The position numbers and the translations under genes are program-made. Shown piece after piece: positions 23,140 through 48,988 of a stretch of DNA of 64,000 nucleotides (positions are counted from its first letter, which is position 1; each line of letters begins with the position of its first letter). The stretch spans positions 18,476,001 through 18,540,000 of the forward strand of contig NC_134470.1 of the NCBI RefSeq assembly GCF_964194025.1, in the 5' to 3' direction. This DNA is from Convolutriloba macropyga. Its lineage: Eukaryota. The notes beneath the pieces were generated by a model. The model was given only the letters and a program-made list of their open reading frames with translations, searched no databases and was not told the DNA's origin.

Positions 23140-23273
23140 TGACAACGTAATTTTGGTCACAGACTACGACGGCCTTTTATATACAAATTTAGATTGCACA
23201 ACTTTACTTTCAGGCAATTCCAAGTCATCCAATATTCAGTTCACTATTCAATCAATGAGGTTCAAACTCTCAC

Positions 23274-24233: not shown

Positions 24234-25329
24234 CTAAAATTGAGATCGAATGACTTACAACCGAACGACTTGCGCATTAAAATTTGTACATTACAAATAA
24301 TATATTTCTCCTCTGAGACAATAAATGATCCGCATCGGTAAAAACCACAAACTGATACCTACGCAGCACATTTGATTAAACTACAGAGCCAATTAGTTAA
24401 ATGCATTTTTTAAAATCTGAAGACAAACACTTGCAATTAAGGCTGGAATCAATAACGCAAAAAGCTATATTTACGAAAAAAACAGAAGTTATTTTATTTC
24501 TTGTGAATGTTTGTGAATATGCATTCATTCGATTAGTATGTTAGATTATAGTTCTGTGACGCTTAAGGCCAAGGCTCAAACTCGAGGCACCCTTTGGTTT
24601 AACCCAAGCTCGGTTAAACCAAAGGGCTTTTAAAACTATAGGGTGACTTAATCAGACACAAGTTGTTTCAGGATCCAAATGTGCAGACTAAGATATCCAG
24701 TTCTACTCGTTGCTTTTAGAATTCCGACAGCAATAAATTCTGATGATGGCAACTACTATTTTAAGAAGTCAAACGATGATGCTTGCTTGCATTGGCGTAT
24801 ATTTAGTTTTCAATAAAACTTCTCAAGAATTCAGGAAAATTTGAAATTTGTTATAATTCTGCAACTGATCTTCAAGAAATTTTCCAAGAAACATACTAAG
24901 AGTATTCCAAGATTTCAACCCCAATTTCTAAGTTTATTCTATCATGCAGCAGATCCATTTCCTGAAAGTGTCAATGAGTGTGATAACTATAGTGAAAAAT
25001 AGGTCAAAACACCTATCGTGACTTCTATAATTCGTGCTCAAGATCCACTTCATTATTGCATTTTACGAGGAGCGACTACGAGTCTACGAAAATTTATCTG
25101 TATTGTGTAACACTTAGCACCCAAATTTCGGTACTAAAACTTGTGATTATTACATACTTTCGTCACCAACATCCAGACAACATTGCTATTTAAAATATGT
25201 GAAATGTTTTAGGGATTGACTCCATGGTGCGATAAGTAAAGTTTATGAAACGCTCAACAATAGTGAATGCTTCCTCAGTAATTCGATATTTTGCTTAATC
25301 AGCACAGGCAGTTTTTGAGTTTTAGATAT

Positions 25330-28300
25330 CTTGAAGCTGCTAAAGGCAATGAAGTTTACATTCTATTCGACTGAAGTGTAAATACTAAATACTACTATTC
25401 TGCATACTGTTCGTGTTAATTCTGCATACATTTTTTTGTTCTTTGATTTTGTAAATTTATGTGATCTGTCCTTAATTTTTAACTTCGGTAGTCGACTAAA
25501 ATTCCTCTAATGCTGTCAGAAGCTACAAATTCTGTTGGATATGAAGTTCAAATGGATGGGAGCGCCATCAATGGTACACGGAATTCGACAGTCCTGGAAG
25601 GCAAAATTGCGCAAAATTTCTCTGAAGCAATGCCCGAACTCAGATTTCATGGAGAAACACCAAATAGAAATGGTAAAGACCTTGATACTCCCGTTGCAAA
25701 AAGTGTTAAAAGGAGCTGTGCTGTTCTTAGTCCGGTGGAAGAGGCAAATCCAGATGTGAATTTAGAGAAGAAAGTAGAATCAAGCATTAAAAGATCAATT
25801 GATAACATAGTTCCGTGTATACTTGAAACGCTTAGGACCGAACTGCGCAATACTATCAGCGAGATTGTCGATTCCAAAACAAGTGATCTAAGAAATGAAC
25901 TCGATGGCAAAGTCAACTTGGAAGCTACCAAATCTAAGCTAAAATTTCTGTCTGAATCTGAGCTCTTGGAAACTTATAACAGAAGAGATAATATCAAAGT
26001 GCTTGAGTTATCTTCATGTTCCACTGATGGTAAAGAAAATTATCAACAGACATCGAAGTTAGTTGTTGATGTTACAGCAGAAATCGGTATGAATTTGAAG
26101 GAGGAGGATATCTCAATTGCGCACCGTCTGCCGTCAAATTCCGAAAGAAAACCAATTATAGCTAAATTTGTGCGCAGGGTAACAAAACTTGACTTCATGA
26201 AAAAGAAAAGAAACTTGGCGCAATCGGAAACTTAAAAAAACGTCAACGTATTTGAAGACTTGAGTAAAGCGAGAGTTATTTTTATCAACTTGATAAGGCA
26301 GATGATAGAATTAATTCAGTATGGTCAAGGGAGGACACTTTGTTCTATGAGTGGAAATACGACTATTTAGCCTACAAAATTCATGGTTTCTACGAAGGTG
26401 GAATTGATCTCAATTAAAGCATAGAAAGTGTACTAAATCGTTTCAACTCCTTTATTCCACCACCAAGCGCAAATATCAATAATCACACTTTTCGTCAGCC
26501 AAATTTCTCACACGACAAACAGCAAACCCAACATCTTTCAGCGATGCCCTCAAACTGTCCAAATTTCAGATTTCCGGACCAAAGTTCTGGACAAAGATCT
26601 TTTATTCGTCCCCAATACTGAAAGTTCTATACATAAAAGCAACACAAAACTTATGACTATCCTCAATGTAAATGTTAGATCTCTTTGAAAAAATTTGTTA
26701 AACCTAGAAGCTTTTATTTATAGTCTGGATGTACAACCTGATGTAATTTGTTTAACTTAAACCTGGCTTTTGGAAACAGATGAAATTTCCATCTATCTTG
26801 TTACTGGATACAATGGTTTTGTAGCCACGAATAGGGATTCTAAAAGGGGTGGAGTCATGTTGCAATGTAACAAATTTTGCAATATTACAACGGAAAGTAA
26901 GATCGACTTTCAGGAAGCTCTTTGTGTAGATATTTGCAAAAAAAACCAAACGTTTAAAACTATAGTTGTATGTAAACCACCACGCTCGTACAAAGTTGAA
27001 TTTGTCAATATGATGGATAAATTGTTAGAAAATCTAAGTTCGAGCAACAGGTCAGTCAATATTTGTGGTGATATGAATTTGGATATTATGAAAAATAATT
27101 TGCTGAGCAGAAATTACTTGAACAGCATTGCAGCAAATGGTTTCTGTATTTCCTCTCCCGAACCAACACGTTCAACTAATAAGTACAGTTCTTGCTTGGA
27201 CCATTTCATTAATCAAAATTTGGGTAAGTATGTTTCTGTAGAAGTTCTAGAACATCAAAATTTTACTGATCATAATCCCGTTATTTTGACGTGGCGAACA
27301 AGTGAAGATATAAATAAAAATGATTTAATACTCCGAGATACTAGCTTTGTAAAAAATCAGGATGCTGTGAGCCGTTATAAAATGGCATTGGAAGCAAATC
27401 TTAACAAAAACAGTGGCATTATTTACAAAAGTGTCGATCCTTGCAACGCTTTTTCCACATTTAACTAACTTTTTCTAAAGTGACAGAAGACTTTGCTCCT
27501 TTAAAAAGTGTCGATAATAAACAAAAAGTTCCGAAGTGGTTTGATAATAGGTTAAAAAATTTACGTCAAAAAAGAAACCATGATTATTATAAATATAAAG
27601 GAAACAAAAATAACAATGACCTGCTGAAGAAAATTAAAGAGTGTAGATTAAGGCTGGAAAAGCAATTAAAATTGCGCAAGAAACAATTCTATCTAAATTC
27701 TTTCCAGAAATGTTTAGGAAACTCTAGACAGACTTTCAAACTACTCAATGAGCTGAAAGGCAAATCATATAAATCACAGAATTTTCCAATCCTATGCAGC
27801 TGTTATCAGACGTTTGATGAACCTTCGGATAAAAATAATGCAAACAATTTCAAGCAAACATTTTCGAGTTCAACAATTTTTTTGCTTCCATAGGACATCA
27901 AGTCAGTAGGCACCTAAATAATAGTTTCCAACCTTCTTTTCCTAGACACCAATGCTCCATGTATATTTACAAAACTACTGCGAGAGAGGTGGGGGATATC
28001 TCAACTAATCTTGACAACAAGTCATCCTCAGGTGTTGATGATATAAGTAACATACTAATCAAATTATCTTCAGATGTCATCAACCCCTACCTAGTGTTTC
28101 TGATAAATTTTTCATTCGACAAAGGTATTTTTCCTAAAGAACTGACTCGAGCAAAAGTTCTCCCACTGCACAAAGAGGGGTCTAAACTTGACCAAAATAA
28201 TTATAGGCCAATTTCACTTCTTGTAGTTTTCAGTAATATTTTTGAAAGAGCTATGTACAATCGCGTGTACCAATATTTTGAGAAATTCTCTATATTTTAT

Positions 28301-29769
28301 AAGAAGCAGTTTAGTGTTAGATCTAAGCATAGTACAATTGATGCACTAGTTGAGTTAACCGAAACTGTTCGCATGAGACAACAACATTCGACCATAGTTA
28401 GTTTCTTTTTGGATTTAAAAAAGGCGTTTGATACTATCAATCATGCATTTCTTTTGGAAAAACTAGAGAGATATGGAATTAGAGGCAACTGCTGGAAATT
28501 GTTTAACTCTTATCTGAGTGATAGAATTCATCATGTTGTAATTAATGAATTAATGGTACTTCATCTGATTTGTCCGAAATCAAAAACGGTGTTCCTCAAG
28601 GATCGATTTTGGGCCCTCTTTTGTTTTTAATATATATAAACGACCTTCCTTTAGTCTGTAAAAATGTTGAAATTTTACTTTTTGCTGATGTCACTAACAT
28701 AGAAGCAGTTGGGTGCTCTGTTGAAAATATAAAGTCAGATTTAGATAGCATAAACGTTTGGCTTCAGAGTAACAAGCTTGTCCTTAATCTTAGTAAAAAC
28801 AATTCAAGTTAACTTGAAAAAATGACCGGCAAATCTTAGTTTCCAATTGAACAAAACTGACATCAAAGTTGAGCATTACTGTAAATATCTTGGGGTAAAA
28901 ATAGATAATAAGTTCTCTTTTCGGGATCATATCGATCATGTGCAAAGTAAACTAAGTAAACAATGTGGTATACTAGCAAAACTCAGACATTATGTTCCTC
29001 GGAATCAACTCATTTCTTACTACAATTCGAATGTGACACCACTAATTCAAAATGGTGCCTTGATTTATGGTTGCTGTACCTACTCAGCGCTTCTACCGAT
29101 CTACCTATTGCAGAAAAAAATTTTAAAATTAATGTATGTTAGAAAAAAGGCGATCACTGCGATGATATTTTTATGAGGCACTCGTTGTTGACTATCTACG
29201 AGTTACACATATACGAATTAATTAAATTTGTTCTGAAATCAATCAATGGTCTACACTAGCAATATTTCAGCAATAATTTGTTTCAATTTAAATCGAACGA
29301 CCGGAAAACCAGAAGTGGGATTCTTAAGTTGCTAAAGGAACCATTTTGTAAAAAGAAGTTGGAGCGCAATTCAATACGTTTTAGAGGTGCTAAACTAAAT
29401 AACAAATTAAAGATAATGCAGATAATTCCCGGTAATTTAGAGAATGGTAGCCAAGCTGAAGTGACAAGTTTCTGTCATAAATTGAAAAACTCATATCTGG
29501 TGTCGAACTACGAGCTAATTAGATTCGTTTTTAACTGAAGCGAACAACAATATTGAACATGTGCTACTCTAGTTTGTTGAATTGATGTCCTATCTGAATA
29601 ATTTGTTAATTTGTGCTATATTTTGCATGTATTGAACGAAGGTTTATCAAGTAATCGTTGTCAGTAATTTATTGGGCAAATTGAAAAAGAAGATCGCTCT
29701 GATCTCGTTATTTGTCCACGTTGCTTGTTTATTATTCAACAACGAAATTAATTCTTTCTTTCTTTCTTT
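25330..29769 (+). mobile_element. Decayed full-length CR1/L2-group LINE in DHX33 intron (same family as 11600-15911)
   Basis: ORF1 at 25510-26235 (LLETYNRRDNIKVL..DISIAHRLPSN). APE (NVRSL, CGDMNLD, TDHNP) and RT (LDLKKAFDT, GVPQGSILGP). Ends in a (tttc)n tail. Confidence 0.93.
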
Positions 29770-30296
29770 AACCGTCTCCGACCTCTACCGTAAATTTGCA
29801 TTGAAACCTTGTCTAATGCATGATTTGTTTTGAGACTTGCCCTCCAGTAATATTTAATTAGAGGCTGATGTTCTTTGTTGAAGATCTCTGATTAGACTGA
29901 TCAAATCATTTCGAGTTTGCCTTGCGCCATTTCTGCTCTGCCTAACCATTTATTAATTAGGAGATAAATAGAAGCTTGCTTCAGTTATCGTTGTTGAAGC
30001 TATAAAAAAGAAAAACAACTATTTCTAGAAGCCAAACCAAATTCTTTGACTAAAAATCAAGAGAAACCCAGTATAACTTCATTCGGTTATCACTTTTCAG
30101 ATATAAAAAAAACATGACTTGCATAAAGCTTGAAGGTTAGAATGCAGCAGTTAATGACCTTTAGTTTCCTATGGATTAAATCATATGCAGCCAAATGATC
30201 TGTAAAATCTGGTTATTCTACACATTTGAGCAAAGACCATTGCATATAAAATTTGATGTGAATGTCACTCCACAAACATAACGAACACAGACTGAC

Positions 30297-30835
30297 CTTT
30301 GATACTGTTCGCAAGGTTCTCACTGCACTCTCAATTTCCTCTTCACCAGTCAGAAACACCAGAATGTCACCATCATTGGGGTTAGCTCTGTGGACTTGAA
30401 TGACAGCAACCATCGTCCTCCAAAGGTAGTCTTGCTCAACTTTGTCCTCTTCTTCGGACAAAAAGAATGACGTCACAGGATGCGACCGTCCTTGCACGTA
30501 TAAAATTGGCGCATCCTCAAAGTAAGAAGAAAACAAATCAACTGACAAAGTCGCAGACATAACAATAACTTTCAAAGACATCGCCGAGCTGTATCCAAGC
30601 GATTTCCGTTGTTTTTGAGCTTTCTTTACCACTCCTAGAAGAATGTCTGTTTGCAAAGATCTCTCGTGAGCCTCATCTATGATTATAACTGAGTATCGTT
30701 TCAAAAGGGGGTCGCTCATAGCTTCTCGTAGGACAATACCATCAGTTGCGTATTTGATTTTAGTCCCTTGACTGGAGACATCCTCAAAACGTACAGAGTA
30801 GCCAACCACATCGCCAATTTTGCAATTCATTTCAC
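30297..30835 (-). CDS. DHX33: DHX33 exon 2 (RecA1 domain)
   Basis: Phase 1 acceptor tgtttag and phase 0 donor gtcagt. Motifs GYSVRFED, TDGIVLRE, DEAHERS, MSAT and FLTGEEEIE. The segment GVVKKAQKQRKSLG..LKVIVMSAT..VDLFSSYF resembles DHX33 specifically. Confidence 0.93.
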
Positions 30836-31499
30836 CTAAACAATAACAAACCAACTAGAAACTCATTTTAGAGTTCAACAGTTTATATTATGTTCGAGGA
30901 AATTGAACACTTGGAAACAACAACAGAAATTTGTTACTGGACAAAACTTAAGTGTTATTAAAAAATCCTCAGACTGCGTTCTAAGCCAATGATAGTCCTG
31001 GTATCCAGGCTAAAAATTACGTATTTGCAAAGCTGCTATTGCAAACAAATGAATCGAATGCAACCAAACAAAAACAGCGGAAGCTTAACAGCACTAAGTT
31101 CCTATGTAGTTATTACAGCATAAAAATTTTCCATAATCTTGACAAGAAAGATTGCACATTCTACGCAAGGCCTCCACTTACGCGGTGGCGATTGCTTCTT
31201 AGGATTACTACTGAGTGTACAATGAGCTTTCAAATATCGGTAAAAAAATAAAAAAAGGGCATTCTTGCTAAACAGTTGGTTGTTCTTTTAGCTTTCTTGC
31301 TTGAACTTTTGCTCATTTAAAGCGAAAAAAAAGCCATTTCTCATTGATCTTTTAAAGCAGATTTCAAGATTTAAACATTCAAACCTTTTCTTTTCCGTCT
31401 AAATTAAAAAGTTAAAGATTGTAACAGCTATTATTTATATACATTTAGAAATCGTATGAAGGCCTAGATATTATATTCTGACAGAATTGCGCCATTCCA

Positions 31500-34400
31500 A
31501 AAGAAATTAATCTCAATTTACACAGTAAATCATACTTTTTCGGACTTTATTACTACTTTATTTCCAGATTATTTTGTCAGGATGGATGCCAAGTTATTAC
31601 AATTAGTGGAGACTATCCAGGATGAGAGTACGAAGCAGGTCGTGAGTACCATTATAAGCGAATTAAAAAAAACCCAGAGCGAGGTTAGTGTGCAATTCAA
31701 AAACATAAAGGATTTTTGCTCAGAGTTAGAAATGCGTGTTCGGGAACAAGAAAGATACACGAGTAAGGACTCCATCATTACTGATAATCCACCGTTTGAC
31801 CCAAACGTTGATGATGATGCATTACTGGAACTGATTGTTTTTTTCATTAAAAAATTTCTGCGTTACGAACTGGAACCGAGTAAAATCAAAGCGTGTCATA
31901 TACTACCTGGTCGAGCCGAAGAAAAGGTCTGATGGCTTCTGTGATCGTCAAGTTTTTGTACTTTCGTGATAAAAACCAGATATATGCGAATCGAAGGTAT
32001 CTCAAAGGACAAAAAAACGAAATAAATCAAAAGAATATTTACGTACGAGAAAGATTACCTGCAATGGATGCTTATATCAAGAAATTCGCAGAAGGCAAGG
32101 GACTCATAACAAGCACTAATAACTGCACTGTGTCCGTATTGTGTGATCAAGGAGATGGGAGAAAAAAACTTGTAAAAGTAAATGATGTTACCGAATTGGA
32201 AAATGTAAAAAATCCAATTGTGCGAGAGCAGAATCGTAGACCAGACCAAATAACTGGTTTCCGTAAACCAAAGCGACCACTTCGATTGACTGATGATGAA
32301 CGTGCTGATCGGCTATTTGCATCATTCTCTCCTGAACAAAAGAAAGCTATCTTCGAAATTGGAAAAGCCAATTAAAGTGCTGGAAAAAGTTTGAACTGAG
32401 AATAACTCATTAAAAATTTTTGTTAACGTCTGAAGTGTTGAAGACACAACACATGTGTGCAAAATTATCTGTGTTTTGTTATACAAGTTTCATCTAAACT
32501 TACTTCTCAAAGTTGAAACAAGGATAAAAAAATTAAAAGTTAATTTTTAACTAAAGTTTCTTAGTTTTTTATTTAGCTTATTTTTATCTGTTTAAGTTTT
32601 CCGTGCTATTGGTTTTCGTTTTTTCAAAATTTACTGCATGAGGTTCTGCGATTTCCGCGGATTCAGGCATTATTGTAATTATATATTTTATATATATGTT
32701 TTTCTTTTTACTTCTACATAAACAAAAACTTGCATCAGGCACTGCGATTTGCGCGACCTGTTGCAAGCTGAGTGAACTTTAAAAATTTGTTGTGTCACTA
32801 ATAGAACTTGAGCTCAGAATACAATTTAGTCTGAAGTACTGCAATTTCCGCGGCTAGTTTACTCTTTTTTTTCTCAATAAATGCTTGAGTTTTTCTGGTC
32901 TGCACTGCGATTCCGCGGCAGCAGGAAAGACTGAATCGAAAAAAGACAGAAAAAAAAGAAAAACAATGGTTTATGGCTGCAATTTTGTCAGAATACTTAT
33001 TGGACATATATGACTTTTAGAATATTACTTCAAAATTTAAGATCAATTCATAGAAATTTTAATGAGCTCGATCAATTTATAAACCAAGAGAAAGCAAAAC
33101 CTGATGTGATTGCATTAACAGAAACCTGGTGCAACCAGTATGCTTTCGAAAATGCTTACCAGTTGAATGGATATGGCCAGTTGTTGAGGAGTGACAGAGA
33201 AAAAAGAGGTGGAGGTGTAGGATTTTTCATTCGGAAAGGCATCAAAGTTCAAATTAAAGCAATAACAAACAATGAACACGTACAATTGTTGACAGTTGCG
33301 TTGTTAGGATATCAAAATGAAAAATTGATAACTGTTGGTTATAAAACTCCAAATTATGGTATAGATGAGTACATAAACGTTTGTCAAGAGCACCTTAATA
33401 AATTCACTATCAAACCGGAGAGTTTGCAAGTTTTTGTGGTGATTTCAACTTAAATGTAATTGAACAAACGAACAAAATCGCTAAGGTTTTGGATTTTTTT
33501 CTCTTGTACAGGACTGCAAATAAAGAATAGATCAGAACCGACAAGAGTCACTTCTTGTACGGCAACATGCATTGATATTTTTTTCGCAAATTTTGAAGCC
33601 TCAGTAAATGTGAAGGATACCATGATTTCTGACCACAGAGGAGTAGAATTGAGCTGCAAGGAAACAAGGGTTGATCCGGAAAAATCAAAGGAAAAATTTC
33701 CTTTTAGGCCCCTAAAAAACTTCAAAATAAGGAACTCAGGTTAGATTTAAATTAGTATTGCAAAAAAACTGGGAACGAAAAGTAAACTATATCTATCTTC
33801 TGATTTGGATTTCAGTTTTACGGATTTAATGAGGGTGATAAACGAGGAGTTGGATCGTCATGTACCCTTGCAACAGTTCAAAAAGCACACTAACAAAAAA
33901 TTCAAACAGGTTCAAAAGCCTTGGTTGAATAACCAGATCAAAAATCTCAGTCTTAAAAAGCTTGAAGCCTACCAAAGATTGAAGAACGAACAGTCTGCCG
34001 AAAATAGAGAAATTTAATAAGCTGCGTAATCATTTAAAAAACCTAACGAAAAAAGCAAAAGTAGAATTTTACGAACAAAAAATTGAAGGAAAGGCTAACA
34101 TAAATAAAAGTTTGTTTTCAATAATAGACGATATTAAGGGAACGAAAATAAAAAAATATTGACAAACTGAATGCTGATGAAATCAATAAATATTTTGTTG
34201 AAATAGGAAAGAAACTATCTGAAAGTTGTAGTCTGCCGCCAGATCTAAGCCGGGTCAGAAAGTTAGAAAATTCCATGTTCTTAACTAACGTCACAGCCAA
34301 AGAAGTTTTCGACATTATCAAGCAAATGCCCAAAAAAACTTCCTCTGATTTGCATAACATTTCAAATCAACTGATTAAGTTCATCAATCCAAGCGTGTGT

Positions 34401-36085
34401 GCAACATTTGCAAAATTAATTAATCGTTGCTTTGATGAGGGCCATTTCCCTAGAACTCTGAAAATTGCCAATGTTATACCTCTGTACAAAAATGATAACG
34501 AAAACGAGTTCGGTAATTACAGACCAATATCACTGCTCCCAGTTATTTCAAAAATTTTCTTTTTTGTCCAAATACTCAGTAATAAACAAGGCTCAGTTTG
34601 GATATCAGGCAAAGAAAAACACAATTGATGCTGTGTCGGAGGTTGTTGAAACAATAAGGATTTCTTTGTGTTCGAAAGAAAGTTACTATGGAGTTTTTAT
34701 TGATTTATCGAAGGCTTTTGATACTGTGAGTCATAAAATTTTGCTCCAAAAATGTTTTGCGTATGGTTTGAGGGGGAAAATTTATGACAATCTTAATTCA
34801 TATTTGACCAACAGACAATGTGTTTCAGTTAGCAAGCAGCGATCATCATTTGAAAGCATTTTTTGCGGTGTACCGCAGGGTTCTGTTTTAGGGCCACTTC
34901 TGTTCTTGATTTACGTAAACGATCTGCCTGCTTTTTGTACAAACTGTAATGTAACTATGTTTGCTGATGATACAAATATTTACGGAAAGGTGGATGATGG
35001 AATTAATGATACAATAGAAAATGTGTCAGTTTGGATGGAATCAAATAAGTTAGCAATCAATAGAGATAGATGCAAGTCTATAAGTTTTGGTGCTACTAAT
35101 GAGACACCTGAAATAAAAATTTATGATTACAGCATCAAATTTGTCGACCACATTAAGTACTTGGGTGTATACATAGATAGTAAACTGAGCTTCAAATCAC
35201 ACATTGAGAAAATAATTAGTCGGATGGATTCATTAACAGCGGCAATCTATCAGTATAAAAATTTTTTCAAAAGACACATACCAGTCCGATTATACAAAGT
35301 TTACGTTCAACCAGTATTACAGTACGGGGTTTTGTTGTATGGAGTGGCCAATACAAGCGAGCTTCAAAAATTAGAGTGGCGGCAAAGCAGAATTTTTCGT
35401 TTGTTATTTTCAGCTAAGAGATTCCAAAGCATTGACGAACTGCGATGTAAACACAAGTTGTTTTCTGTTAAAGAGTTACACATATATGAACTGATAAAAT
35501 TACTGTGAAGAATTCTCCGCCATGAACATCCAAGCAAATTATTAAATAACTCATTTCCGGAATTAATCGAAGAAAATATCCAAATAAATGAAAGAACTCA
35601 TCTAGTCAAAACAAAATATTTGCAAACGAAGCAAAGAAACAAGTCACTCATAAATAGCTTAAGACGCTTATATAATGTTTTAACTAAAATGGATGAAAGT
35701 ATTATTCAAAAATTATGCTCATTTAGTGCACAGGATTTAGCAAACTTTTTACATTGTTTTAGAGACTCATTTATTATAGATAACAGATTTTTAACCTTTT
35801 TTGGTAAGGAATAAAGCGAGCTGCATTTTTTTTGTAAAATTGGCATTCTTATTAAACATTTTCTTAGGGGTTTCTAAGTTTGATTGGAAAGTGGTATTAC
35901 CAGGGTAAAATATGATTTTAGAGGGTTTGAATTAACAAATAAGTAGACTTTGAGAAGAATTAAAAGGCATCACTTGACAGGTCTAGCGACCTTTTGATGT
36001 CCTTTCGGGTTATGTTTTGTTGTTTGTAAATTTATAAATGCAAGCAATGGAATAAACTCGAGAACTAATTTATTATTTATGATTA
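31500..36085 (+). mobile_element. Decayed full-length CR1/L2-group LINE in DHX33 intron
   Basis: ORF1 at 31582-32375 (EQERYTSKDSII, IKACHILP, VIVKF). APE from 33010 (QNLRSI, TETW, SDHRG). RT at 34465-35508 (IDLSKAFDTV, GVPQGSVLGP, FADDTN). aataaa near 36051. Confidence 0.93.
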
Positions 36086-37789
36086 AATGGGGATAGGGAA
36101 AAATGCTGTCCATTTTTGAGAGTAACCAGTCGTTTCTTTTTAATTAATACAAACTCGACGAGACTGCGATTTACGCATATGCGTGTAGATTTATGAAAAA
36201 ATTTTCAGTCATAAAGAGAACAAACACTCAATTTTGCTCCTCTAGCTCTTTAAAAGGCTATTTAAATTCACAGCGGTAAAAAAAACTTGAAACTTTGTAA
36301 CTTGTGTATTTCGGTTTCAAAGCTTTAAAATCAATTTCGAGTTATGTTTCAAAAAATGGGATCGAAAAAAAACCGGATTAGTAGATAGTGTAAGTGTAAA
36401 ACAACTAGAACTTTCAATCAACTACATAATGGAACGTATGTTACAAAGCAATCGTAACTAGGACCAAAATTACTGCATGGGAAACACGATGCAAGACTGC
36501 TACTGTCCGCAATTTTTACATAATTACCAGGAGGCTCGGAATGGTGCGCCGTACATTGTTCCTGCCCCTCTCATCACAACTACTGAAACCAAAAAATGTT
36601 TCCAACTTTTGAGAAACATTGCAGTCAGACTGTCAAAAATAGCCAAGAGACAGACATGAATGCCGTAGAATCCAGATAGATACATCTACAGAAATGCGTC
36701 GCTGAAACGCCACTTTCGAAAAACACTGAGTTCAAATGATATTTCTTGGTTCATTTCATTCCGCTGAAACCTTTTCATCACGGATCATAACAACAAAAGG
36801 GTCTTAATGACCTTGAATTAACTTCATTCGAACTTAAGCTTTAACGTGTAGATCATAAAAAGTTCATACAGTTGAAAAACAGTCGTGAAAAGAACCTGAA
36901 ATTGAAAAGGGGATAACAATAAAAACAGCACTCAAAGCACGTCAAGTCATCAAGAACTCGCGAAAATCTAATTTCCCTCTTATCTAAAAAATAGCTGTTT
37001 CTGGCTTGAATCTTAATGTTTTTGTTACCTGTGCTGCCTCAGGGTGATTAACCGTTCTGATGTGCTATCTCAAACTTGGACTTCCAATTGACCTCGAAAT
37101 CATGAAAAATCGTGAATACTTCCTTAAAAAACAGCACCTAAAATAATCTTAAATATGAAATTGGACCACAATAACCGCTGAATGAGTACATGAAGCTTCC
37201 CCGAAAAACTCATATTTGCTAATGTTTAGGTGAAAGACACAATTATATGGAAACATTTCAATATTCGCGTAAAATTTGATCAAAAATTTAAAAATCTAAT
37301 AAAAATCTCGTTTCTTTTCAAATCTCAGTGTTGTCCAAAAGACAAAATGCAGACTGAGCCATTATTGATTGGTAGCCAGTCAATTGTGCATGCGCGCACA
37401 GTGCATGATAGCACTAAAACATCAAACTTCTCTGGTTTTCCAGGTTTGATAAAAAAAAGATTTTGGTTTTGAATTTTTTTAACATTTAACCATTAAGACA
37501 GATCAATTTACTTTCACTGATTCTTAAAACTTAAGCGAAGATTTAAAACAAACAGAAAACTGGATTAAAAATGAGGTTAACATAGGCGAATGACAGGTTA
37601 AAAATTCATTAAAATGTCTGAAAATTTATCGCATGTTCTGCATTTCTGTACTACATTGACAAAACAATGATATTCTTATATTCCAAAGATAAACTCGAAA
37701 ACCACTAGTTAATGTAAATGATATTTTAACAAAACTTTGACCAAAATTAAACATTTTGAGGTGAAACATGGGCATGAACGGCCGACTTT

Positions 37790-39690
37790 TTTTAAACGAT
37801 TTCTGCTGCTTGAGTAACATGACATTTGGTAAGATGTTAACCGAAAGCAGGACCATGTTTTTTCAATGAATCAAAAAGTTTTCTCAGTTTTACAAGAGTC
37901 GACAGCGATACCATCGTCCGCATACCAATTTTGAACTGTGATGCAATCGTCAAAAATTCAGTTGAGGGGAAATTGCAATTCGATACATCGACGAATTACA
38001 TATGGAATGATATAGAGAAGGGCATTTCTCAATGTTTCATAAGATCACTGTTGAGACTACTGAAAGCATTTTTTTGCTTCGGTAAGCCGGATCGCTTCCG
38101 AATTTTAGTTTATTAAAAACAGCTCTCAATTAATGAATGGCAAGTTCAATTTCTCCCTTTTAACCCATACAGTTGTTGATCAACAAATATCTTCAGGTCG
38201 GTTTTACTACAGGTGACAATAATTCTTCCAGTAACTCGCCTTAAGAATTCCACAATTCCTATCGATCGTACACCAGGGCATGTATCAAGAGCTATCAACC
38301 CAAATGAATTGTACGGAAGGGAAGTCAAACGAGAAGTTACTAAGCCTATTGATAGTATAACAATCGTTTTGCATAGATCAGTCGAGCACGCCTTAAGGGA
38401 TGTCAGAAGCCATCGCCATTCGTTGGCATCCGTTCGTTTCTTTCAAGAGTCTTCATGACAGATTTTCTATCCATTGAGTTTTTCAAATATAGACTGTTAT
38501 GCTAAAAGTTTGGATGTTCATTGCCCACTAGATAACTCAAATTTAATTGCGTGGTTCCGGATGTTTTTCGCGTAAGACATTAAGGACTGTTTTCTTGTCA
38601 ACTTTGACAGTTAAAGAGGGGACGCCAACTTTCGCTTCTTCATTAAGATATCGAATGGTAGTGGCGGTTTTTCCTGTTGACATGTATTTATCAAATTCTT
38701 TGTACTCATCGACGAATCGTTTTGCTTCTATTCCGCTCATACGTTCCTGGATAGCTTTTTCTTTAAGAAACAGTGAACCTATGTCTTAATTCATCCATTG
38801 GTCTCAAACCGTCTTTGTTATTTGAGGCGTTATCCTCCGTTAGTGTTCCTGCAAGAATGGGATGAGGCATCATCATTGCACAGTAAATTGCCGTTCCCGC
38901 GTTAGAAAAATTTAAAGTGGCGGACAAGATTTCATTCAAGGTATTGGTTAACTTAAAATTTGTCGTGTTTCTTGGGAGCGTAAAAAAGACTGCTTTCCTG
39001 TGAACAATTTGTTTGTATATGTTCTCGATCTCTTGTTTGCTTTCCATGAGGTTAGGCCATTAGCCGTACGGTTCAGAACAGGCTTCCTTAGAGACGCTTG
39101 GAATGTCTTGTTATCGACTACTGCGTGGCTTAAGAGTTGTTTCCGCTGCATGGCTGAGAGGAGTTTAGATATTCTTTGGTTTCGCAGCAAAAGTTTTCAT
39201 GGTGTTCTCGCCCAGCGCTGAGTCCGCTACACTTAACGTGCTATAAGTGGCGAACCCCTCCACCTCTTAGATGACTTGAACATTTTCGGCAAGGTGACTG
39301 CTCGGACATTAGTGGGAGAGATATAAATAATTTAGGCTGTTGGTAGTCTTGAAAAAGTATCGTGGAATATACAGGTTTAATATTGTGGAATGCGGTCGAT
39401 TCTCGAATACAGTACAATTTTTGAATACCTGCACATGGAGGATGCATCCCATCGTTGCAAAGTTTTCTCTATTTTCGCTTCTCATCGAGAATCGAGCTTT
39501 GTTGTATTCTTTTCAGCCAATTCGTCAATCGAATGCTACAAGAATTTCTAATAGATGCACGTTGAATCCAGTAACCAGTTCTTGTTCACTCAATCAATTG
39601 GGTTTTTTCGAGCAATTGAAAATATTTTGACAAGTTTGTGGCAGATTGTTTGGAAAAAACCATTCATAATCATAATGAAATGATGAGATA
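37790..39690 (-). mobile_element. Decayed CRE-like (RLE-clade) non-LTR retrotransposon, 5' part (copy 1)
   Basis: RT motifs LREKHP, LIALDTCPGVRSIGIVEFLRR, WYADDG (~37909-37926) and KHGPAFG. ORF2 starts MSEQSPCRKC at 39309. Upstream is an SGNH-like LCNDGMHP. Confidence 0.8.
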
Positions 39691-40910
39691 TTAGTAGTAG
39701 TAGTAGAGAATTCGAGTAAGTTTCCCGGGGCTTCAATTTGTTCCCCTGTGTCAGTCCAGTTTCAGTTGTTAAGTTTTTACCAATTGTTACAATTGTCACA
39801 TCTGCAAATGATACGCCAAGAGCGTTTGTTTGTTAGGCTGAATTGAGTTGTGAGGAAGTGCCAGTGAGCTTCTATGATAGTGTGTTTGCTTAATCTGCCT
39901 TGAAATTTTTTAATATTTATTTAAAGCGTTGTACAGTTGTTTCGTTCGGTGGAAGAAGTTTTCATCGGATTTGACAAGTCGGTTATTTTCAATTTTCAGT
40001 TCACCTCTACGTGTTGCCTTGTCCTATCGACTTCAAGGGTTATAAAATTTGTCGGCATACCAAATTCATTACGTGTAATAGCCAGGAAGAGAAGAAGATC
40101 ATGCAGTCCAACTTAGTGACAGTGGAAGGAGTTTTAGGCTAATGAGACGTTTTTAGGCTAATGGTTGGAACAATAAAACCAGTATAGCACTTCATTTTGG
40201 TTGACGTTGAGCTGATTGCTGACATACTTCGTTTTATTCGGAGAAAGCACTAGTCGCTTTTTGCACTCTGTAGTTGCAGTTGCCTTGCCCTGAGAGATTT
40301 GATGTAATTATTAAACCAAGGTCTTTTTGGGATTCAGTTGGTTTTATTTCCTGGCCACACATAGAAGTCGTGAGATTACCCCCTAACATTTAACAACTTG
40401 CATTTGTTCGCATTTAACTCCATTCCATTCTCTCGGCACCAGTCTTCAAGATTTTTTCGGCTTCTGTCCAGTTTTGCCTGACCATGAACAATGAACTTAT
40501 AGTCGTCTGCAAATCAAAAATCTTCAATACCGGGGTTTGCATCTGGAAAGTCAGATAAAATTAAACTCTATACAAATTAAGAACAGTAGTGGTCCAAGTA
40601 TGGAACCTTGTGGGACTCCACTTGTTACGTTCTCCAAACTTGAACAACAATTTCCAACTTTGACAAATTCTTTTCTATCTTCTAAGTATGAGTGCAAGAG
40701 TACTAATATATTCCCTCCTACGTCAAAACTTTCCAGTTTCTTATTGAGAAGGTGATGTGGTACTTTATCAAAATCTAAGTAGAGGATACTAATGTCGCCC
40801 GATGAAATTGTGTCAAACATGCGATATACTGTGACGAGAAACAGTAGAAGCTGAGTGGTTGCCGATCTGTTCTTTCGAAAGCCGAATTGATTTTCGTTTA
40901 ATCTGTGACA
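39691..40910 (-). mobile_element. 5'-truncated, internally deleted CR1-like LINE with (cta)n tail
   Basis: Motifs NQFGFRKNRSATTQLL, YLDFDKVPH and SGVPQGSILGP. C-terminal SWRIICRCDNC. tagtagtagtag at ~39692. Confidence 0.82.
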
Positions 40911-41324
40911 ACAATGAGAATATATTGATGATTGAGCTAAGGTACTTGAAATATCGTTTATCGTTTGTCTTCCTTGTCTCAATATTCCCTTGTCTCAACT
41001 CCTCAGTCGCTAAATACACTTCCTCAGCCGAATTTTGCTGAACGCCTCTTCAAAATCTTCAGCATAAACAAAGGTGCTTCCGGTTGCGAAGTATCGTTGC
41101 GACAATAAGCAACTCAAGGTTGTTCTTTTTAAAAACCGTCAACTAAAAGAGGCCCCTCCCCTTTTAGAGGGTAGGCGATCAACAGGGGGCATCAAATTTT
41201 GGGCGCAGGGCAAAATAAATACTCGATAGAGTTTAAAATAGCCTCCCTTCGTCCACAATGGTTCCTTTTAATGCTCCTATAATGTACATCATGCTATTTT
41301 AATACTGGACATCTGCACACATAC

Positions 41325-41550
41325 CTGCCATGTAATTAGCTACCGTTATCGCCGCAACTCTTCGAGGCTGTGTGCAGAGTATACATGAGCTGCTTCCAAT
41401 TCCCGCCTCAAAAAGAAATTCCGGTATTCGCGTAGTCTTTCCACTAGCCGTTTCACCTATTACTACGCATGTTGGTGATTTTGAAATATATTTCACTAGT
41501 TCATCTTTAGCTGAGTATATTGGCAGTAGCTGCGAACCAACAGGAGGCAT
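41325..41550 (-). CDS. DHX33: DHX33 first identifiable coding exon (Walker A, motif Ia)
   Basis: Reads LPIYSAKDELV..GETASGKTT..TQPRRVAA. Phase 1 donor G|gtatgt. An acceptor tttcag lies 4 nt upstream of the ATG, so a further upstream exon is possible. Confidence 0.9.
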
Positions 41551-41725: not shown

Positions 41726-44700
41726 AGACAAAATGTAGTTTAATCAGAACAGTTACAGAGAGTTCAAGAGCAGTATTTACAAAAATGATGACAAAAATTA
41801 TTTCTATCAGTACCAGTCAAGAAAAAGAACGAATTTAAATAGGAGACGAGAGGTTGGATACAGCGAAGGGTTTGCTACAAACCAGCAATCAACTTAAACG
41901 AGATAAAATTATCAGACCGTAAGTCTTCTATAAGAAAATCAAACAACTTTAAAGTCTCCCTTCCTCGACAACAGCCCCCATGGAAGCCTCGACTGGCTGC
42001 AGTCGTCGGCGCGAGCGGGAACCGCGCAGTCAGATTACGGAGCCCTGGAGCAGCGCAGAGCTAATTTTCGTTCGGATAAACATGATGTTGGCGTAGTTGT
42101 CGTTCTTAAGGCTGTTTGCTGGCAACTTGCGTTATCACCCTGCACCTTGCTGAAGGTCCCTCTCCTTCTGTGCAAGAAAAAATCAATGGACTGAAAGTAC
42201 CCTTCTCATTGTTGTTGTTGTTGTTGGGGATTTTCTTTACAGAACGGATTTCTCCCGATCAAAACATTTATAGAAAATTAGTCCAAGTCTCTCTGCAGTG
42301 TTGACAGTCACAACAGATCTGCCACGTGCAGACGTTTTCTGGTTTGTACCACATCATGGTATCATTCCAGATTTGCTTTAGAATTCTGTGCTTTAGTCCG
42401 TGTTGATTTCCGAAGACAATGCTGTGATGAAGTCTGCTGCCTATCCTTTGGGTGCGAAAGAAAAATTCGCCGCAAGATTTATCGAGTCGTTTTTTCGTAT
42501 TATTTATAACTCGAGGCTCGTATTTCAATTTTTGATATTTTCATGGTAGCTATACGCGTCTTCAATTTTTTCGTGCAGCTTTTCGCAAAGGGGTTGAAGA
42601 TTTTTACATCGAAGAACGTTTTCGTGAATCTGCTGTCCCAGAGGCCATTGGCTTTAATATCCAATCGTTCGTCATCTTCATTGCTTGAAGTTATATTTCC
42701 AAAGGACTCGCCTTGCAACGGCAGAAGATTGGGCTCGATTTCGACATCAAAATAAAAGTCCTCAAGCAGATTGGCGACAGAGTCACTGATGTCGTTATGT
42801 CTAAAGTGGGTATACCACCCTCTTGGACAGTGAAGGGCATGGGCAACTGTGAACGGCTCGCCACTAACACAGTTTGACAAAAGTTTGGGGGCTCCCAGCC
42901 ATACAGAAGGGCAATAATATCTCGGAATTCAAACTTGGACAGATTCAAGTTATACTTTTTCAATGGCATGGCAATAAGCCAAAACGAAGCTCCTTTTTTC
43001 AGAGGCTAAACCAAATGCATACATTTTGTTTGCATTCAACCAATTCTTAAAGCTCAATTTTGTCTCATTCATTTTCACTCGTTTATCTTTTCTGATCTTC
43101 TCAACTCTTCGGATTCGTATTTGATAAGTCCCCGAGGGATAGCGGCTCTGAACTGGTTTTGAACGTTCATGTTCGAGAAATCTATCTTCAGGGTGAATGA
43201 TGTTGAGTCCAACTTCGCGTTCGGGGAGTGAAAATATCTCACGATAGTTCTCGTCATAATTGTTGTTAGATACAAGATTAGGGATTAGGTGATCATTGAT
43301 AACTCTCTCGGCTTCTTTCAACAAGTCGAATGTGTCTGTCGTTGTCCTCGATAAGAAGGTTAATTTATGCTGCACAGAGTTTGTCAAGCTAAATCTTTGT
43401 TCAAACTGTTGACGACATTTTTTGCACCAAAAAGAGGACGGCCTGTGTCTCCAGTTGCTCGAAGGCTTCATGTAGAGAGTGAATGGCATGTTCAATTCCG
43501 CATCTTTGACCAAGGCAAAGTTGGAGATTACCTCCGAGGAATTTGAGGTCGTTTTTGACGCATGAAACAATGGCCCTACAAATGATGCGTCAGATTACCT
43601 CACCAACACCAATGGGCCGTAAACAAGGGCATATTATAGAGTGGTATCAACCTAGAACTATTCTTTGCAACAAGAAACCCTAACTAGTGTGTCGCAATTA
43701 AAATAGTCAACTTTGTCAATAATTTCCATATACAGTTTGACGAAGATATGAACGACGTGAAGATGCGTTTCCATACATTTGCATCTAATCCTGAGGAACC
43801 ATGGCTGCCGTATACTTTCATGGCCGATCTACGTACTGCAGTTGCGTTAATGCGATCAGATACAGAGTGGTGATAGGGTAGTGTTATTAAACGGGGGTCG
43901 TTTACAATGTAGTCAAGATTTGCAGTCTGTGGGGCCGGGTGCTTTTCAAATAATGTGTCCATTACTGTTTTCGTTCCCAGTTTCTGATTTAGGGGTTGGA
44001 CACCGCCCTTCGATTCGTGGGATAGACATCAAAACGCCTTCGAGACTTTTCCAGTTTCCATGTTTCTGTCGAATGATTTGAATTCAATTGTTTCATGTTA
44101 AGACTTCGATTTTGTAAATTTGTCTTGTAGTGCTTTCGCCTCTAGAAATAATAATTCTTTTTTGAGAACATTGTGAGAAATAGAAAAATTAGATGGGGTC
44201 TCTTAGGAGTTCGATAAAACCAGATGAAGAGATGGACAAAGGAGTTCGATGTTTATAAGGGTTAAGTCTCTGTTCAAACTGTTGAAGGCATTTTTTGCAT
44301 CAATAAAGAGGATAGCTTGTGTCTCCGGTTGCCCGAAGATCTTAAGTAGAGAGTGAATGGCATGTCTAATTCCGCTTCTTTGACGAAGACAAAATGTAGT
44401 TTAATCAGAACAGTTACAGAGAGTTCAAGAGCAGTATTTACAAAAATGATGACAAAAATTATTTCTATCAGTACCAGTCAAGAAAAAGAACGAATTTAAA
44501 TAGGAGACGAGAGGTTGGATACAGCGAAGGGTTTGCTACAAACCAGCAATCAACTTAAACGAGATAAAATTATCAGACCGTAAGTCTTCTATAAGAAAAT
44601 CAAACAACTTTAAAGTCTCCCTTCCTCGACAACAGCCCCCATGGAAACCTCGACTGGCTGCAGTCGTCGGCGCGAGCGGGAACCGCGCAGTCAGATTACG

Positions 44701-47049
44701 GAGCCCTGGAGCAGCGCAGAGCTAATTTTCGTTCGGATAAACATGATGTTGGCGTAGTTGTCGTTCTTAAGGCTGTTTGCTGGCAACTTGCGTTATCACC
44801 CTGCTCCTTGCTGAAGGTCCCTCTCCTTCTGTGAAAGAAAAAATCAATGGACTGAAAGTACCCTTCTCATTGTTGTTGTTGTTGTTGGGGATTTTCTTTA
44901 CAGAACGGATTTCTCCCGATCAAAACATTTATAGAAAATTAGTCCAAGTCTCTCTGCAGTGTTGACAGTCACAACAGATCTGCCACGTGCAGACGTTTTC
45001 TGGTTTGTACCACATCATGGTATCATTCCAGATTTGCTTTAGAATTCTGTGCTTCAGTCCGTGTTGATTTCCGAAGACAATGCTGTGATGAAGTCTGCTG
45101 CCTATCCTTTGGGTGCGAAAGAAAAATTCGCCGCAAGATTTATCGAGTCGTTTTTTCGTATTATTTATAACTCGAGGCTCGTATTTCAATTTTTGATATT
45201 TTCATGGTAGCTATACGCGTCTTCAATTTTTTCGTGCAGCTTTTCGCAAAGGGGTTGAAGATTTTTACATCGAAGAACGTTTTCGTGAATCTGCTGTCCC
45301 AGAGGCCATTGGCTTTAATATCCAATCGTTCGTCATCTTCATTGCTTGAAGTTATATTTCCAAAGGACTCGCCTTGCAACGGCAGAAGATTGGGCTCGAT
45401 TTCGACATCAAAATAAAAGTCCTCAAGCAGATTGGCGACAGAGTCACTGATGTCGTTATGTCTAAAGTGGGTATACCACCCTCTTGGACAGTGAAGGGCA
45501 TGGGCAACTGTGAACGGCTCGCCACTAACACAGTTTGACAAAAGTTTGGGGGCTCCCAGCCATACAGAAGGGCAATAATATCTCGGAATTCAAACTTGGA
45601 CAGATTCAAGTTATACTTTTTCAATGGCATGGCAATAAGCCAAAACGAAGCTCCTTTTTTCAGAGGCTAAACCAAATGCATACATTTTGTTTGCATTCAA
45701 CCAATTCTTAAAGCTCAATTTTGTCTCATTCATTTTCACTCGTTTATCTTTTCTGATCTTCTCAACTCTTCGGATTCGTATTTGATAAGTCCCCGAGGGA
45801 TAGCGGCTCTGAACTGGTTTTGAACGTTCATGTTCGAGAAATCTATCTTCAGGGTGAATGATGTTGAGTCCAACTTCGCGTTCGGGGAGTGAAAATATCT
45901 CACGATAGTTCTCGTCATAATTGTTGTTAGATACAAGATTAGGGATTAGGTGATCATTGATAACTCTCTCGGCTTCTTTCAACAAGTCGAATGTGTCTGT
46001 CGTTGTCCTCGATAAGAAGGTTAATTTATGCTGCACAGAGTTTGTCAAGCTAAATCTTTGTTCAAACTGTTGACGACATTTTTTGCACCAAAAAGAGGAC
46101 GGCCTGTGTCTCCAGTTGCTCGAAGGCTTCATGTAGAGAGTGAATGGCATGTTCAATTCCGCATCTTTGACCAAGGCAAAGTTGGAGATTACCTCCGAGG
46201 AATTTGAGGTCGTTTTTGACGCATGAAACAATGGCCCTACAAATGATGCGTCAGATTACCTCACCAACACCAATGGGCCGTAAACAAGGGCATATTATAG
46301 AGTGGTATCAACCTAGAACTATTCTTTGCAACAAGAAACCCTAACTAGTGTGTCGCAATTAAAATAGTCAACTTTGTCAATAATTTCCATATACAGTTTG
46401 ACGAAGATATGAACGACGTGAAGATGCGTTTCCATACATTTGCATCTAATCCTGAGGAACCATGGCTGCCGTATACTTTCATGGCCGATCTACGTACTGC
46501 AGTTGCGTTAATGCGATCAGATACAGAGTGGTGATAGGGTAGTGTTATTAAACGGGGGTCGTTTACAATGTAGTCAAGATTTGCAGTCTGTGGGGCCGGG
46601 TGCTTTTCAAATAATGTGTCCATTACTGTTTTCGTTCCCAGTTTCTGGTTTAGGGGTTGGACACCGCCCTTCGATTCGTGGGATAGACATCAAAACGCCT
46701 TCGAGACTTTTCCAGTTTCCATGTTTCTGTCGAATGATTTGAATTCAATTGTTTCATGTTAAGACTTCGATTTTGTAAATTTGTCTTGTAGTGCTTTCGC
46801 CTCTAGAAATAATAATTCTTATTTGAGAACATTGTGAGAAATAGAAAAATTAGATGGGGTCTCTTAGGAGTTCGATAAAACCAGATGAAGAGATGGACAA
46901 AGGAGTTCGATGTTTATAAGGGTTAAGTCTCTGTTCAAACTGTTGAAGGCATTTTTTGCATCAATAAAGAGGATAGCTTGTGTCTCCGGTTGCCCGAAGA
47001 TCTTAAGTAGAGAGTGAATGGCATGTTTAATTCCGCTTCTTTGACGAAG
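41726..47049. repeat. Near-identical tandem duplication, unit 2661 bp (41726-44386 / 44387-47049)
   Basis: All ORFs repeat at offset 2661 with only a handful of substitutions. Junction microhomology is ag(a/g)caaaat. Confidence 0.97.
42209..42500 (-). mobile_element. 3' end of CR1-like LINE inserted in the CRE C-terminus (second copy 44870-45161)
   Basis: CTWQICCDCQHC...stop followed by a (caa)n tail. It splits the CRE reading KYEPRVIN|EKGTF. Confidence 0.75.
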
Positions 47050-48309
47050 GCAAAATTGGAGATTACCTCAGATGAACTTGAGGTCATTTTTACGCACGTA
47101 ACAATGGCCCTACTTATGATGCGTTGCATTACCTCATTAAAACCCATGGGCCGTACACTAGGGCATTTATTGAGTGGTATTAACCTAGAACTATTATATT
47201 TATCAAGAAAGCACAACTCGTGTGTCGCAATCAAAATAGTCAACTTTGCCAATGACTTGCATATTTCGTTTGACGTAGATTTGAACGATGTGAGGATGCG
47301 CCTCCATTCATTTGCATCTATTTCTGAGGAACCATGGCTGCCGCGTGTCTTCATCGCCGATCAACTTATTGCAGATGTGTTAGTGCAATCATTTATAGAG
47401 TGGTGATAGGGTGATATATTTAAAGGGGGGTTTTTCACAACGTTATTATGATTTGCAGTCTGTGCTTGTCAACTAATATGTCCATTACTGTTTTCGTTAC
47501 CAATATGAGGTTGAGGGATAGGACACCGCCCTTCGATTTGTAGGTTAGACATCATAGTGCATTCGAGACGTTTCCAGTTTCCATGTTTTTGTCGAATTAT
47601 TTGAATTCATTTGTTTGATGTTTAGACTTCGATTTCGTAAACCCATCTTGTAGTGCTCTCACTTCTAGAAAAAAATTCAAATTCGCAATGTATCCAGAGG
47701 TGCAGTCAGTTATCTATGATTTTCGTTGCCCATTTTTGTTCTAGCGAGGATGGGATGGAGCATGACCATAGCGGCTAACATCTCAGCTTCACTGTTATAG
47801 TTAATAGCCTCACATTGTGACACTGCAACGCTGAGCGCCTCAACAAAGCGATAGCCAACTTTATTTTTGCTCAATTGGAGAAAGAGTGGTTTTCAGTGAA
47901 CAATTTCTCGGTAAACGTTTTGGAGCGTTTTTTTCTTACCGGTGGTTAGATTGGACCAGAAGTTGGTAGTGATGAGAAAATCAGGGATATGGGGGCAGGG
48001 GTGTGGTTTGACATGGGATGGGTATGGGATCCATGGTTAAGAGGATCTGCAATTTTTGCATTCGCGCTTGCTGGTGTCTCGTTGATTAATGCTTCGTGGG
48101 TGCGTGAGCTGGGGCAGTTTTTGCATTCGAAGTTGCCATGTTGTTCGCGCGCAAATCGATGTCCGCTACATTGGACATGCATATAATTACCGCATTAGTA
48201 TCACCATCTATCCCTATTCTTGAGGAACTTGAGACACTTCGAGCAGTGCGTCTGCTCGGACGTGGGAACAGTTTGTCAATGAAGGGAGGATAGATGCGTG
48301 TGATAGTTA

Positions 48310-48833
48310 ACGAAATCTTTTAAGGAATGTAGTAGTAGACGAGAAAACTTGATTACCAGTATAAGAAAAATGAACAATCATAAAAAACATGAAAGACGAT
48401 AGAGTAAATGAGGGGGAGATAACATGAGGGAAACAGTAATGTAACAATTTATAAATCGCGCAATTTTTCAAACAAAGCTAATGGTTTATCAAACGATTGT
48501 CTGTTGATGGGGTGATTTTAGAAGCTATCAGGACTGATGGGTTGAATTTGTTCTAACAAGATCAATTAGGAGTCGATAACATTCAATGACATAAAAATTG
48601 GATTTAGAATGATCATTGAAGCCAAAAGTTATGATCACACAGCGAATACTCAGATGGTAGTAATGTTGGACAACGTCAAGGAGGTCCCCGTATATTTGCA
48701 CCGGGAAAAGAAAATATTGTCGCGCCGATGTCACTGCCCTTAAGATAGAATTAAACAATACAAAATGTTTTATGAATACATAGTGCTGGGAGGGCCCCGG
48801 AGGAGCCAATATTGACCAAGCGTTGGGGAACAT
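48310..48833 (-). pseudogene. SGNH hydrolase/esterase ORF1 of CRE-like element (frameshifted)
   Basis: Block I-like VLFNSILR, block II SFPGANIR (adjacent frame), block III VIITFGFND and block V-like VHFSYTGN, in the canonical order. Confidence 0.65.
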
Positions 48834-48870
48834 TTCTTAATTTACATTTTTTTGGTATATAATGATTTAG

Positions 48871-48988
48871 GTGTCTTTCCTATTATAGCCCCCCCACCTA
48901 CTAGTCAGATAACCTATACACCCCAATACTGTTAAAAATACAATAATTAGGGGCTATAGTTTCATGGGGGCTATAATAGGAAAGACCC
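48871..48988. mobile_element. MITE (second GG-ended TIR family)
   Basis: TIRs gtctttcctattatagccccc and gggggctataataggaaagac. Related ends occur at ~8702-8727 and ~49119-49140. The TSD is unclear. Confidence 0.7.

Follow-up and report, generated by a model that had tools for sequence, protein, structure and literature searches.

A LINE family of the restriction-like endonuclease (RLE) type in the genome of Convolutriloba macropyga carries an esterase-type ORF1 directly upstream of the open reading frame (ORF2) for its PHD-like finger and reverse transcriptase (RT), and this arrangement is well supported by the copies of the family found in the genome. The association of an RLE-type LINE with an SGNH esterase ORF1 and a PHD finger is the point of interest of this work, and it is independent of a second, divergent copy of the family (copy 2) that lies in the window (the whole stretch of DNA that was analysed, 64,000 nucleotides long). 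A preliminary description of this DNA had read an esterase remnant just upstream of ORF2 in copy 2; such a remnant is not established. We lean, if only slightly, towards the view that copy 2 is a 5'-truncated fragment lying beside intron DNA, which contains a chance look-alike of one of the esterase blocks (block V, the DxxH block).

The features of the window that enter the argument are listed below.

36861 to 37738, no strand assigned: a different old interspersed repeat next to copy 2 at its 3' break; the genome has more than 40 matches to it, 67-72% identical
37747 to about 39371, minus strand: copy 2, an internal LINE fragment, 70-81% identical to more than 40 genomic copies
39372 to 39688, minus strand: unique stretch that separates copy 2 from the LINE insertion, claimed as the ORF1 tail and holding the motif; matches only itself
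39415 to 39465, minus strand: block V (DxxH) look-alike KLCNDGMHPPCAGIQKL, with the 8-mer LCNDGMHP, 13.3 bits on the block V profile
39689 to 40926, minus strand: 5'-truncated, RT-bearing LINE insertion whose 3' end is of the (CTA)n type; represented by more than 70 copies in the genome (75-90% identity)
40927 to 41324, minus strand: intron DNA, also unique, that separates the LINE insertion from the helicase exon and was supposed to contain blocks I-III; no profile match
41325 to 41500, minus strand: DEAH-box helicase exon (motifs I and Ia), ending at an AG/GTATGT donor
48310 to 48836, minus strand: esterase remnant of copy 1, in four collinear ORF1-profile pieces (E 1.5e-11 to 0.0075)

The esterase-type ORF1 of the family

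The ORF1 of the family is about 177 aa long, contains the blocks LVIGTSRTKY, YRGA, AGFNDH and CKDGIHFSFYG, and has a stop codon that precedes the ORF2 ATG by about 55 nt. With one family ORF1 as query, a protein search returned at least 150 ORF1 loci in the genome, which include intact ORFs from several lineages (29-62% identity). When the 40 best matches to the ORF2 start were cross-referenced with the ORF1 matches and the loci were read, ORF1 was found directly upstream in at least 29 of the 40 and was absent in two. Additionally, in the upstream direction, homology among the family copies extends about 800 nt beyond the point where their homology to the window copy ends, and family pairs with 77-80% identity in ORF2 show 69-89% in ORF1. 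Measured against the first sequence of A1, the ORF1 lineages of the genome are 30-39% identical; the S, G, N and D-H blocks are conserved in 11 ORF1s, and block V is among the best conserved ORF1 segments across lineages, the tail that follows it being variable.

Pfam and PDB sequence searches gave no match for the intact ORF1 of the family. An AF2 model of one intact ORF1 (L031 1396-1926; pLDDT 70, pTM 0.74) has PAF-AH alpha, TesA and OatA as its top Foldseek matches in the PDB (E 2.6e-5, TM about 0.6), and on this modelled structure the family ORF1 is assigned an SGNH hydrolase fold (flavodoxin-like alpha/beta) and is a predicted esterase. ORF2 comprises a PHD-like finger (a weak match, E 0.0036), RT motifs and a C-terminal CCHC/PD-D/ExK-like region, where both RT and RLE were read from motifs in the family copies and not from a curated model; Pfam did not recognize the RT and RLE pieces of the family.

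The preliminary description was thus right in regarding an esterase ORF1 as part of the family design, as the other copies (at least 29 of 40), the intact 177-aa ORF1s and the fold match indicate. The independent support that it drew from copy 2 does not hold, since the flank of copy 2 has no significant esterase similarity, and this copy is not to be counted as independent support for the design.

One of the intact 177-aa ORF1s, with both ATG and stop (L031 1396-1929; G000 C16:36204590-36205123), is followed by a broken ORF2, which implies that ORF1 can outlive ORF2 in single copies.

Copy 2 and its 5' limit

The second, divergent copy that had been noted on the minus strand is confirmed; it is dead, and at the DNA level it does not resemble the copy at 42-48 kb. 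Judged by its collinear homology (37747-39355) to more than 40 copies, copy 2 is assigned to the RLE-type (CRE-like) LINE family. Its 1.6 kb comprise the spacer and the beginning of ORF2 with the PHD-like finger and the N-terminal half of the RT region; the copy carries many stops and frameshifts and lacks 2 kb or more at its 3' end, where the older repeat (one short piece of which reaches 80% identity) adjoins. The differences between copy 2 and the family are evenly distributed over the codon positions (e.g. 0.22/0.18/0.24), which indicates that the 20-28% divergence reflects neutral decay from closely related masters. With masters so closely related, the ORF1 of the master of copy 2 would be expected to be about 70-80% identical to that of the family; the flank is not.

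Protein-level similarity of copy 2 to the family is confined to 37768-39354, and at the DNA level homology ends at 39355-39371 for every copy used in the comparison, no more than a few bases from the place of the family ORF1 stop codon, with identity falling from about 80% to 40-50% across about 15 nt. Two other family copies, L012 and L002, also start in the spacer, about 5 nt from the limit of the window copy and about 15 nt further in, respectively, so that a 5' end at this place recurs in the family. The sequences flanking them bear no relation to one another, to the window or to ORF1, and the block V motif is absent from both (best scores of 5.6 and 6.8 bits).

Of the family copies that we examined, about 20 in number, three (the window copy, L012 and L002) therefore begin within a 20-nt stretch of the spacer after the ORF1 stop, their 5' limits being 39355-39371 in the window, about 1490-1505 in L012 and about 1499-1503 in L002 (element-sense orientation). 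This shared limit may represent a preferred 5' end (an internal start, with an ORF2-only RNA) or a truncation hotspot, and the recurrence of copies that begin right after the ORF1 stop offers a lead towards a possible ORF2-only transcript or preferred 5' end.

Search for ORF1 in the flanks of copy 2

Upstream of copy 2, the DNA in which ORF1 would have to lie is divided by the LINE insertion into two stretches. In DNA searches of the 1.18-Gb genome, the flanks 39356-39690 and 40911-41300 gave no second match, and neither did the 38-aa motif piece in a protein search of the same genome. An nhmmer search, for which the DNA profile was built from 12 upstream regions of the family, found no match at the locus at E <= 10; on copy 1, used as positive control, the same profile gave a marginal match (E 0.19). 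When a profile of 13 intact ORF1s from six lineages was run with hmmsearch against all six-frame pieces of the window, the copy-2 flanks contributed only 8 residues at 0 bits. No Pfam family, SGNH models included, was recognized in any stop-free flank piece at E <= 1 to 10, tblastn gave no ORF1 match in the copy-2 flanks, and a blastn-short search for rearranged or inverted homology returned only a 13-mer at E 0.41.

We also used a frameshift-tolerant alignment of the ORF1 profile to DNA, for which 400 random real segments of the window served as null (15.1 +/- 2.5). The stretch 39306-39688 scored 19.8 (p = 0.065), along a best path that bypasses the motif, and 40927-41324 scored 11.2, under the null mean; the esterase remnant of copy 1 scored 162.9. 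The joined flanks, compared with copy 1 (48200-48950), gave a best tblastx E of 0.78. Removing the insertion and aligning the joined flanks to SGNH profiles and to 48310-48833 was the check put forward in the preliminary description, and no significant similarity emerged from it (Pfam, ORF1 profile, p = 0.065, E = 0.78). The other point raised there, whether homologous copies have the upstream region, has a divided answer: they do have one, but of a different sequence that cannot be aligned with that of the window. On both of these grounds, which it had itself named, the locus-specific claim largely fails.

Neither flank aligns to profile positions 17-27, which correspond to block I (the nucleophile Ser, GTSRTKY in the LINE esterases of this genome), and no profile, Pfam or tblastn match was found in the flanks for block II (the Gly of YRGA) or block III (GxND, AGFNDH). 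A weak block III remnant had been suggested at 41090-41120; its two halves, LLIV and RND, sit in two different frames, and they lie about 135 codons upstream of the motif Cys once the insertion is removed, compared with about 78 in the family, which is about 57 codons too far. The stretch that would contain it, 40927-41324, is the one whose ORF1 profile score falls below the background mean, and a TIND at about 40958 shares just ND with block III. The flanks hold no trace of the conserved N, L and P positions between blocks III and V, and no ORF1 stop codon precedes the spacer. Out of the whole claimed remnant, only the C-x-D-G-x-H motif matches anything.

These comparisons bear directly on a reading that we regard as highly improbable, in which the flank would be the tail of the family's own ORF1 after heavier decay than in the remainder of copy 2. 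The motif would be rightly placed for it, and ORF1 is indeed present in most of the family copies that extend to the ORF2 start; against this, it takes only about 15 nt for identity to drop from about 80% to chance level, nhmmer finds no match, and family pairs of equal ORF2 divergence keep 69-89% identity in ORF1, an unevenness that neutral decay cannot produce. The identity of the flank to the family ORF1 is at the level of unrelated flanks (outside the motif, 0.49 to the family tail versus 0.50 for the shuffled null), and not the 70-80% or so seen in equally diverged family pairs, by which the family's own ORF1 was discarded as the source of the flank.

Hypermutation (editing) was also rejected as the origin of the identity drop, G making up only 13-15% of the family ORF1 region, too little to bring identity down to 49%. 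Base composition fails to separate ORF1 from intron DNA.

The block V look-alike

The DxxH loop reported upstream of MSEQSPC is present: KLCNDGMHPPCAGIQKL stands on the minus strand at 39465-39415, with its Asp codon at 39453 and the Cys codon of the motif at 39459-39457. The ORF2 ATG of copy 2, the start of MSEQSPC, is located at 39309-39307, and the DGxH lies 144 nt (48 codons) upstream of it in the same frame, in accordance with the approximately 140 nt first given. Both KLCNDGMHPPCAGIQKL and MSEQSPC are held by one stop-free frame of 75 codons (39468-39244); by an estimate from base composition, about 8% of random sequence with the same composition would be expected to be open from the motif to ORF2. 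The letters ELVTGFNVHL, described as preceding the motif, do occur at 39581-39552 on the minus strand, although in a frame that differs from that of the motif.

As a separate observation, the frame of the ORF2 ATG is open for 53 codons upstream in copy 2 and is closed about 17 codons upstream in the family copy L003.

The motif matches the C, D, G and H of the most conserved family block, plus the G five residues after the His, and its six codons differ from the family at third positions only; in the family copy L003, block V itself reads CNDGIH. Compared with 11 ORF1s, the window motif lacks the F that invariably follows the His, and it lacks the near-invariant N and L as well. On the family block V profile, LCNDGMHP reaches 13.3 bits, a score attained at 5 of the 128,000 six-frame codon positions of the window, and the block V of decayed genuine family copies, with 10-15 bits, does no better. 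DG.H occurs four times and C.DG.H once among the same 128,000 positions. The motif starts 127 nt upstream of the spacer anchor, and block V of ten family copies starts 117-127 nt upstream. Once the positional window and the choice among four blocks are taken into account, a score this high would by our estimate occur at this place by chance with a probability of about 5e-4 to 3e-3.

With the full profile, HMMER aligns LCNDGMHP to fCkDgvhF with 0 bits and an E of 0.03-0.04 for the single piece, and with the profile of 13 intact ORF1s the block V alignment of the motif piece ranks about 1330th of 2481 domain alignments. The 83 nt between motif and spacer are 49% identical to the family (shuffled 0.50 +/- 0.01, p = 0.83), compared with the 83% that family pairs keep over the same stretch. 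Anchored DNA alignments of the flank to the family do give z = 2.8-4.0, a signal that is gone once the 24-nt motif is removed and is thus due to the motif alone. Taken as a sequence match by itself, then, the motif is unlikely by chance (about 5e-4 to 3e-3), and its surroundings give it no support.

Origin of the motif

The explanation towards which we lean builds on the observed homology limits, the uniqueness of the flanks, the absence of a profile match and the intron context. According to it, the 5' end of copy 2 would lie in the short spacer just past the ORF1 stop, so that the copy never contained ORF1 or no longer does; the DNA upstream (39372-39688, and 40927-41324 beyond the later LINE insertion) would be ordinary unique intron of the helicase gene; and the C-N-D-G-M-H stretch would be a chance look-alike of esterase block V. 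We infer both that the motif arose by coincidence and that copy 2 truly ends at its 5' limit. This explanation covers all the negative results, together with the recurrent 5' limit, at the cost of a coincidence of about 1 in 300 to 1 in 2000. The value of the locus is as a caution: a catalytic motif of a few residues can occur by itself, correctly spaced, in DNA that is otherwise unrelated.

The points that speak against chance, i.e. the score of the motif and its exact position relative to ORF2, the restriction of the differences in its six codons to third positions, and the frame open from the motif into ORF2, favour instead a second explanation, which we consider less probable although it deserves real weight. 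In this case, the motif would be the block V remnant of a foreign or very divergent esterase ORF1, joined to ORF2 by recombination in the inter-ORF spacer, and the window would hold its sole surviving copy, decayed and then split by the LINE insertion. The homology break coincides with the boundary between the ORF1 and ORF2 modules, as such a junction would have it, and block V is indeed among the best conserved segments, with a variable tail, across lineages sharing 30-39% identity. Exchanges of ORF1 modules among LINE lineages have, moreover, been described (PMC3905857, discussion; PMC4120745). Against a foreign ORF1 stand the lack of a second example in 1.18 Gb, the lack of any trace of blocks I-III or of the N, L and P positions between III and V, the missing invariant F after the His and near-invariant N and L, and the lack of an ORF1 stop codon before the spacer. 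Furthermore, the ORF2 of the master is close to that of the family, which would make the swap recent, and yet no other copy of its product is found. If this explanation were true, copy 2 would be direct evidence that RLE-type LINEs swap esterase ORF1 modules in this genome, and would be the only survivor of a chimeric subfamily and the trace of a second, lost ORF1 lineage.

A third source for the motif would be an unrelated, older esterase-bearing element (e.g. one with a CR1/L2-type ORF1) that was hit by the insertion of copy 2. The HP that follows DG.H in the window fits it, being more common in general SGNH enzymes than in the LINE esterases of this genome; nevertheless, we give this source very little credence, as the flank is repeated nowhere in the genome, the Pfam SGNH models give no match, and the family-like distance to ORF2 would be another coincidence. 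Minor variants and readings that we have not covered would, all together, take up a small share.

Comparison with other retrotransposons

The SGNH-type esterase ORF1 of non-LTR retrotransposons was reportedly described by Kapitonov and Jurka in 2003. ORF1s of this type occur in the non-LTR retrotransposons CR1, L2 and RTEX, and also in Penelope-like elements (Schneider et al. 2013, PMC3905857). In the open-access literature that we searched, esterase ORF1s are named only for CR1, L2, RTEX, Penelope-like and some LTR elements, and the terms "restriction-like endonuclease" and "esterase" came up together in one paper, in its reference list only.

Like the esterase ORF1s of CR1, L2 and RTEX, the small ORF1 of the present family stands directly upstream of the RT ORF and shows the GTS, G, GxND and DGxH blocks, its model matching PAF-AH, TesA and OatA; the PHD-like finger (a weak match) is a further likeness, to CR1-like elements. 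The family differs from them in that its ORF1 is short (about 177 aa), with no coiled-coil noticed, in that ORF2 is without an APE domain in the parts seen, and in the C-terminal CCHC/PD-D/ExK-like region, as read from motifs alone. The copy-2 locus differs further, having only a block V look-alike of 8-12 residues.

Copy 2 resembles ordinary 5'-truncated intronic LINEs in its size of 1.6 kb, its stops and frameshifts, its flanks of unique intron DNA and repeat, and its sense orientation. Unlike them, it also lacks the 3' end, a loss that target-primed reverse transcription alone does not explain, and its 5' limit, immediately past the ORF1 stop, is one that recurs in the family.

A modular exchange of ORF1 among LINE lineages is the subject of Metcalfe and Casane 2014 (PMC4120745) and of the discussion of PMC3905857. 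A foreign ORF1 at copy 2 would need such a swap, with its junction in the inter-ORF spacer; in contrast to exchange as discussed there, the putative foreign module has no second copy and one short motif as its support.

Genomic context and further observations

Copy 2, the LINE insertion and the older repeat are contained in a 10.5-kb intron of a DEAH-box helicase gene that occupies 22400-41500 of the window on the minus strand (exons at 41325-41500, about 30216-30836, about 23802-24233 and about 22459). The intron is delimited by the exon at 41325-41500 and by the next exon, which begins at about 30836 behind a TTTAG acceptor and contains GYSVRFED, DEAHER, SAT and FLTGEEEI. GETxSGKT and TQPRRVAA are also present, TNIAETS and QRSGRAGR follow in later exons, and Pfam recognizes DEAD (E 2e-4) and Helicase_C (E 7e-10) in the downstream exons. 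Copy 2 and the LINE insertion are both in the sense orientation of the gene, and the claimed esterase remnant is separated from the helicase exon by only 398 + 317 nt of unique DNA, the kind of sequence expected of an intron.

The insertion upstream of copy 2, first placed at 39691-40910 and called CR1-like, is real and is a later LINE, with limits that more than 70 genomic copies set at 39689-40926: nearly all of them start at window position 40926, and the 3' end of the copies that retain it falls at about 39689. Its RT piece is recognized by Pfam (RVT_1, E 1.1e-9, 40554-40994).

Copy 1 contains a 2661-nt tandem duplication (41726-44395 and 44387-47056, 99.7% identity), which doubles part of its RT/RLE region. 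Elsewhere in the genome, family copies or ORF1 pieces recur on the same strand at a regular spacing of about 2.25 kb, 1.09 kb or about 12 kb (G000 C11:10611322/10613572/10616721; C7:2065380/2066466; C16:31651245-31664208; C3:47847566-47859032; C4682:17278/29208/41141), and these regularly spaced copies are head-to-tail tandem arrays of partial elements.

Finally, most copies of the RT-bearing LINE fragment hold about 115 nt that are missing in the window copy (query positions 1036-1047), and the fragment looks like an amplified, truncated derivative of 1.2-1.35 kb rather than a set of random 5' truncations.
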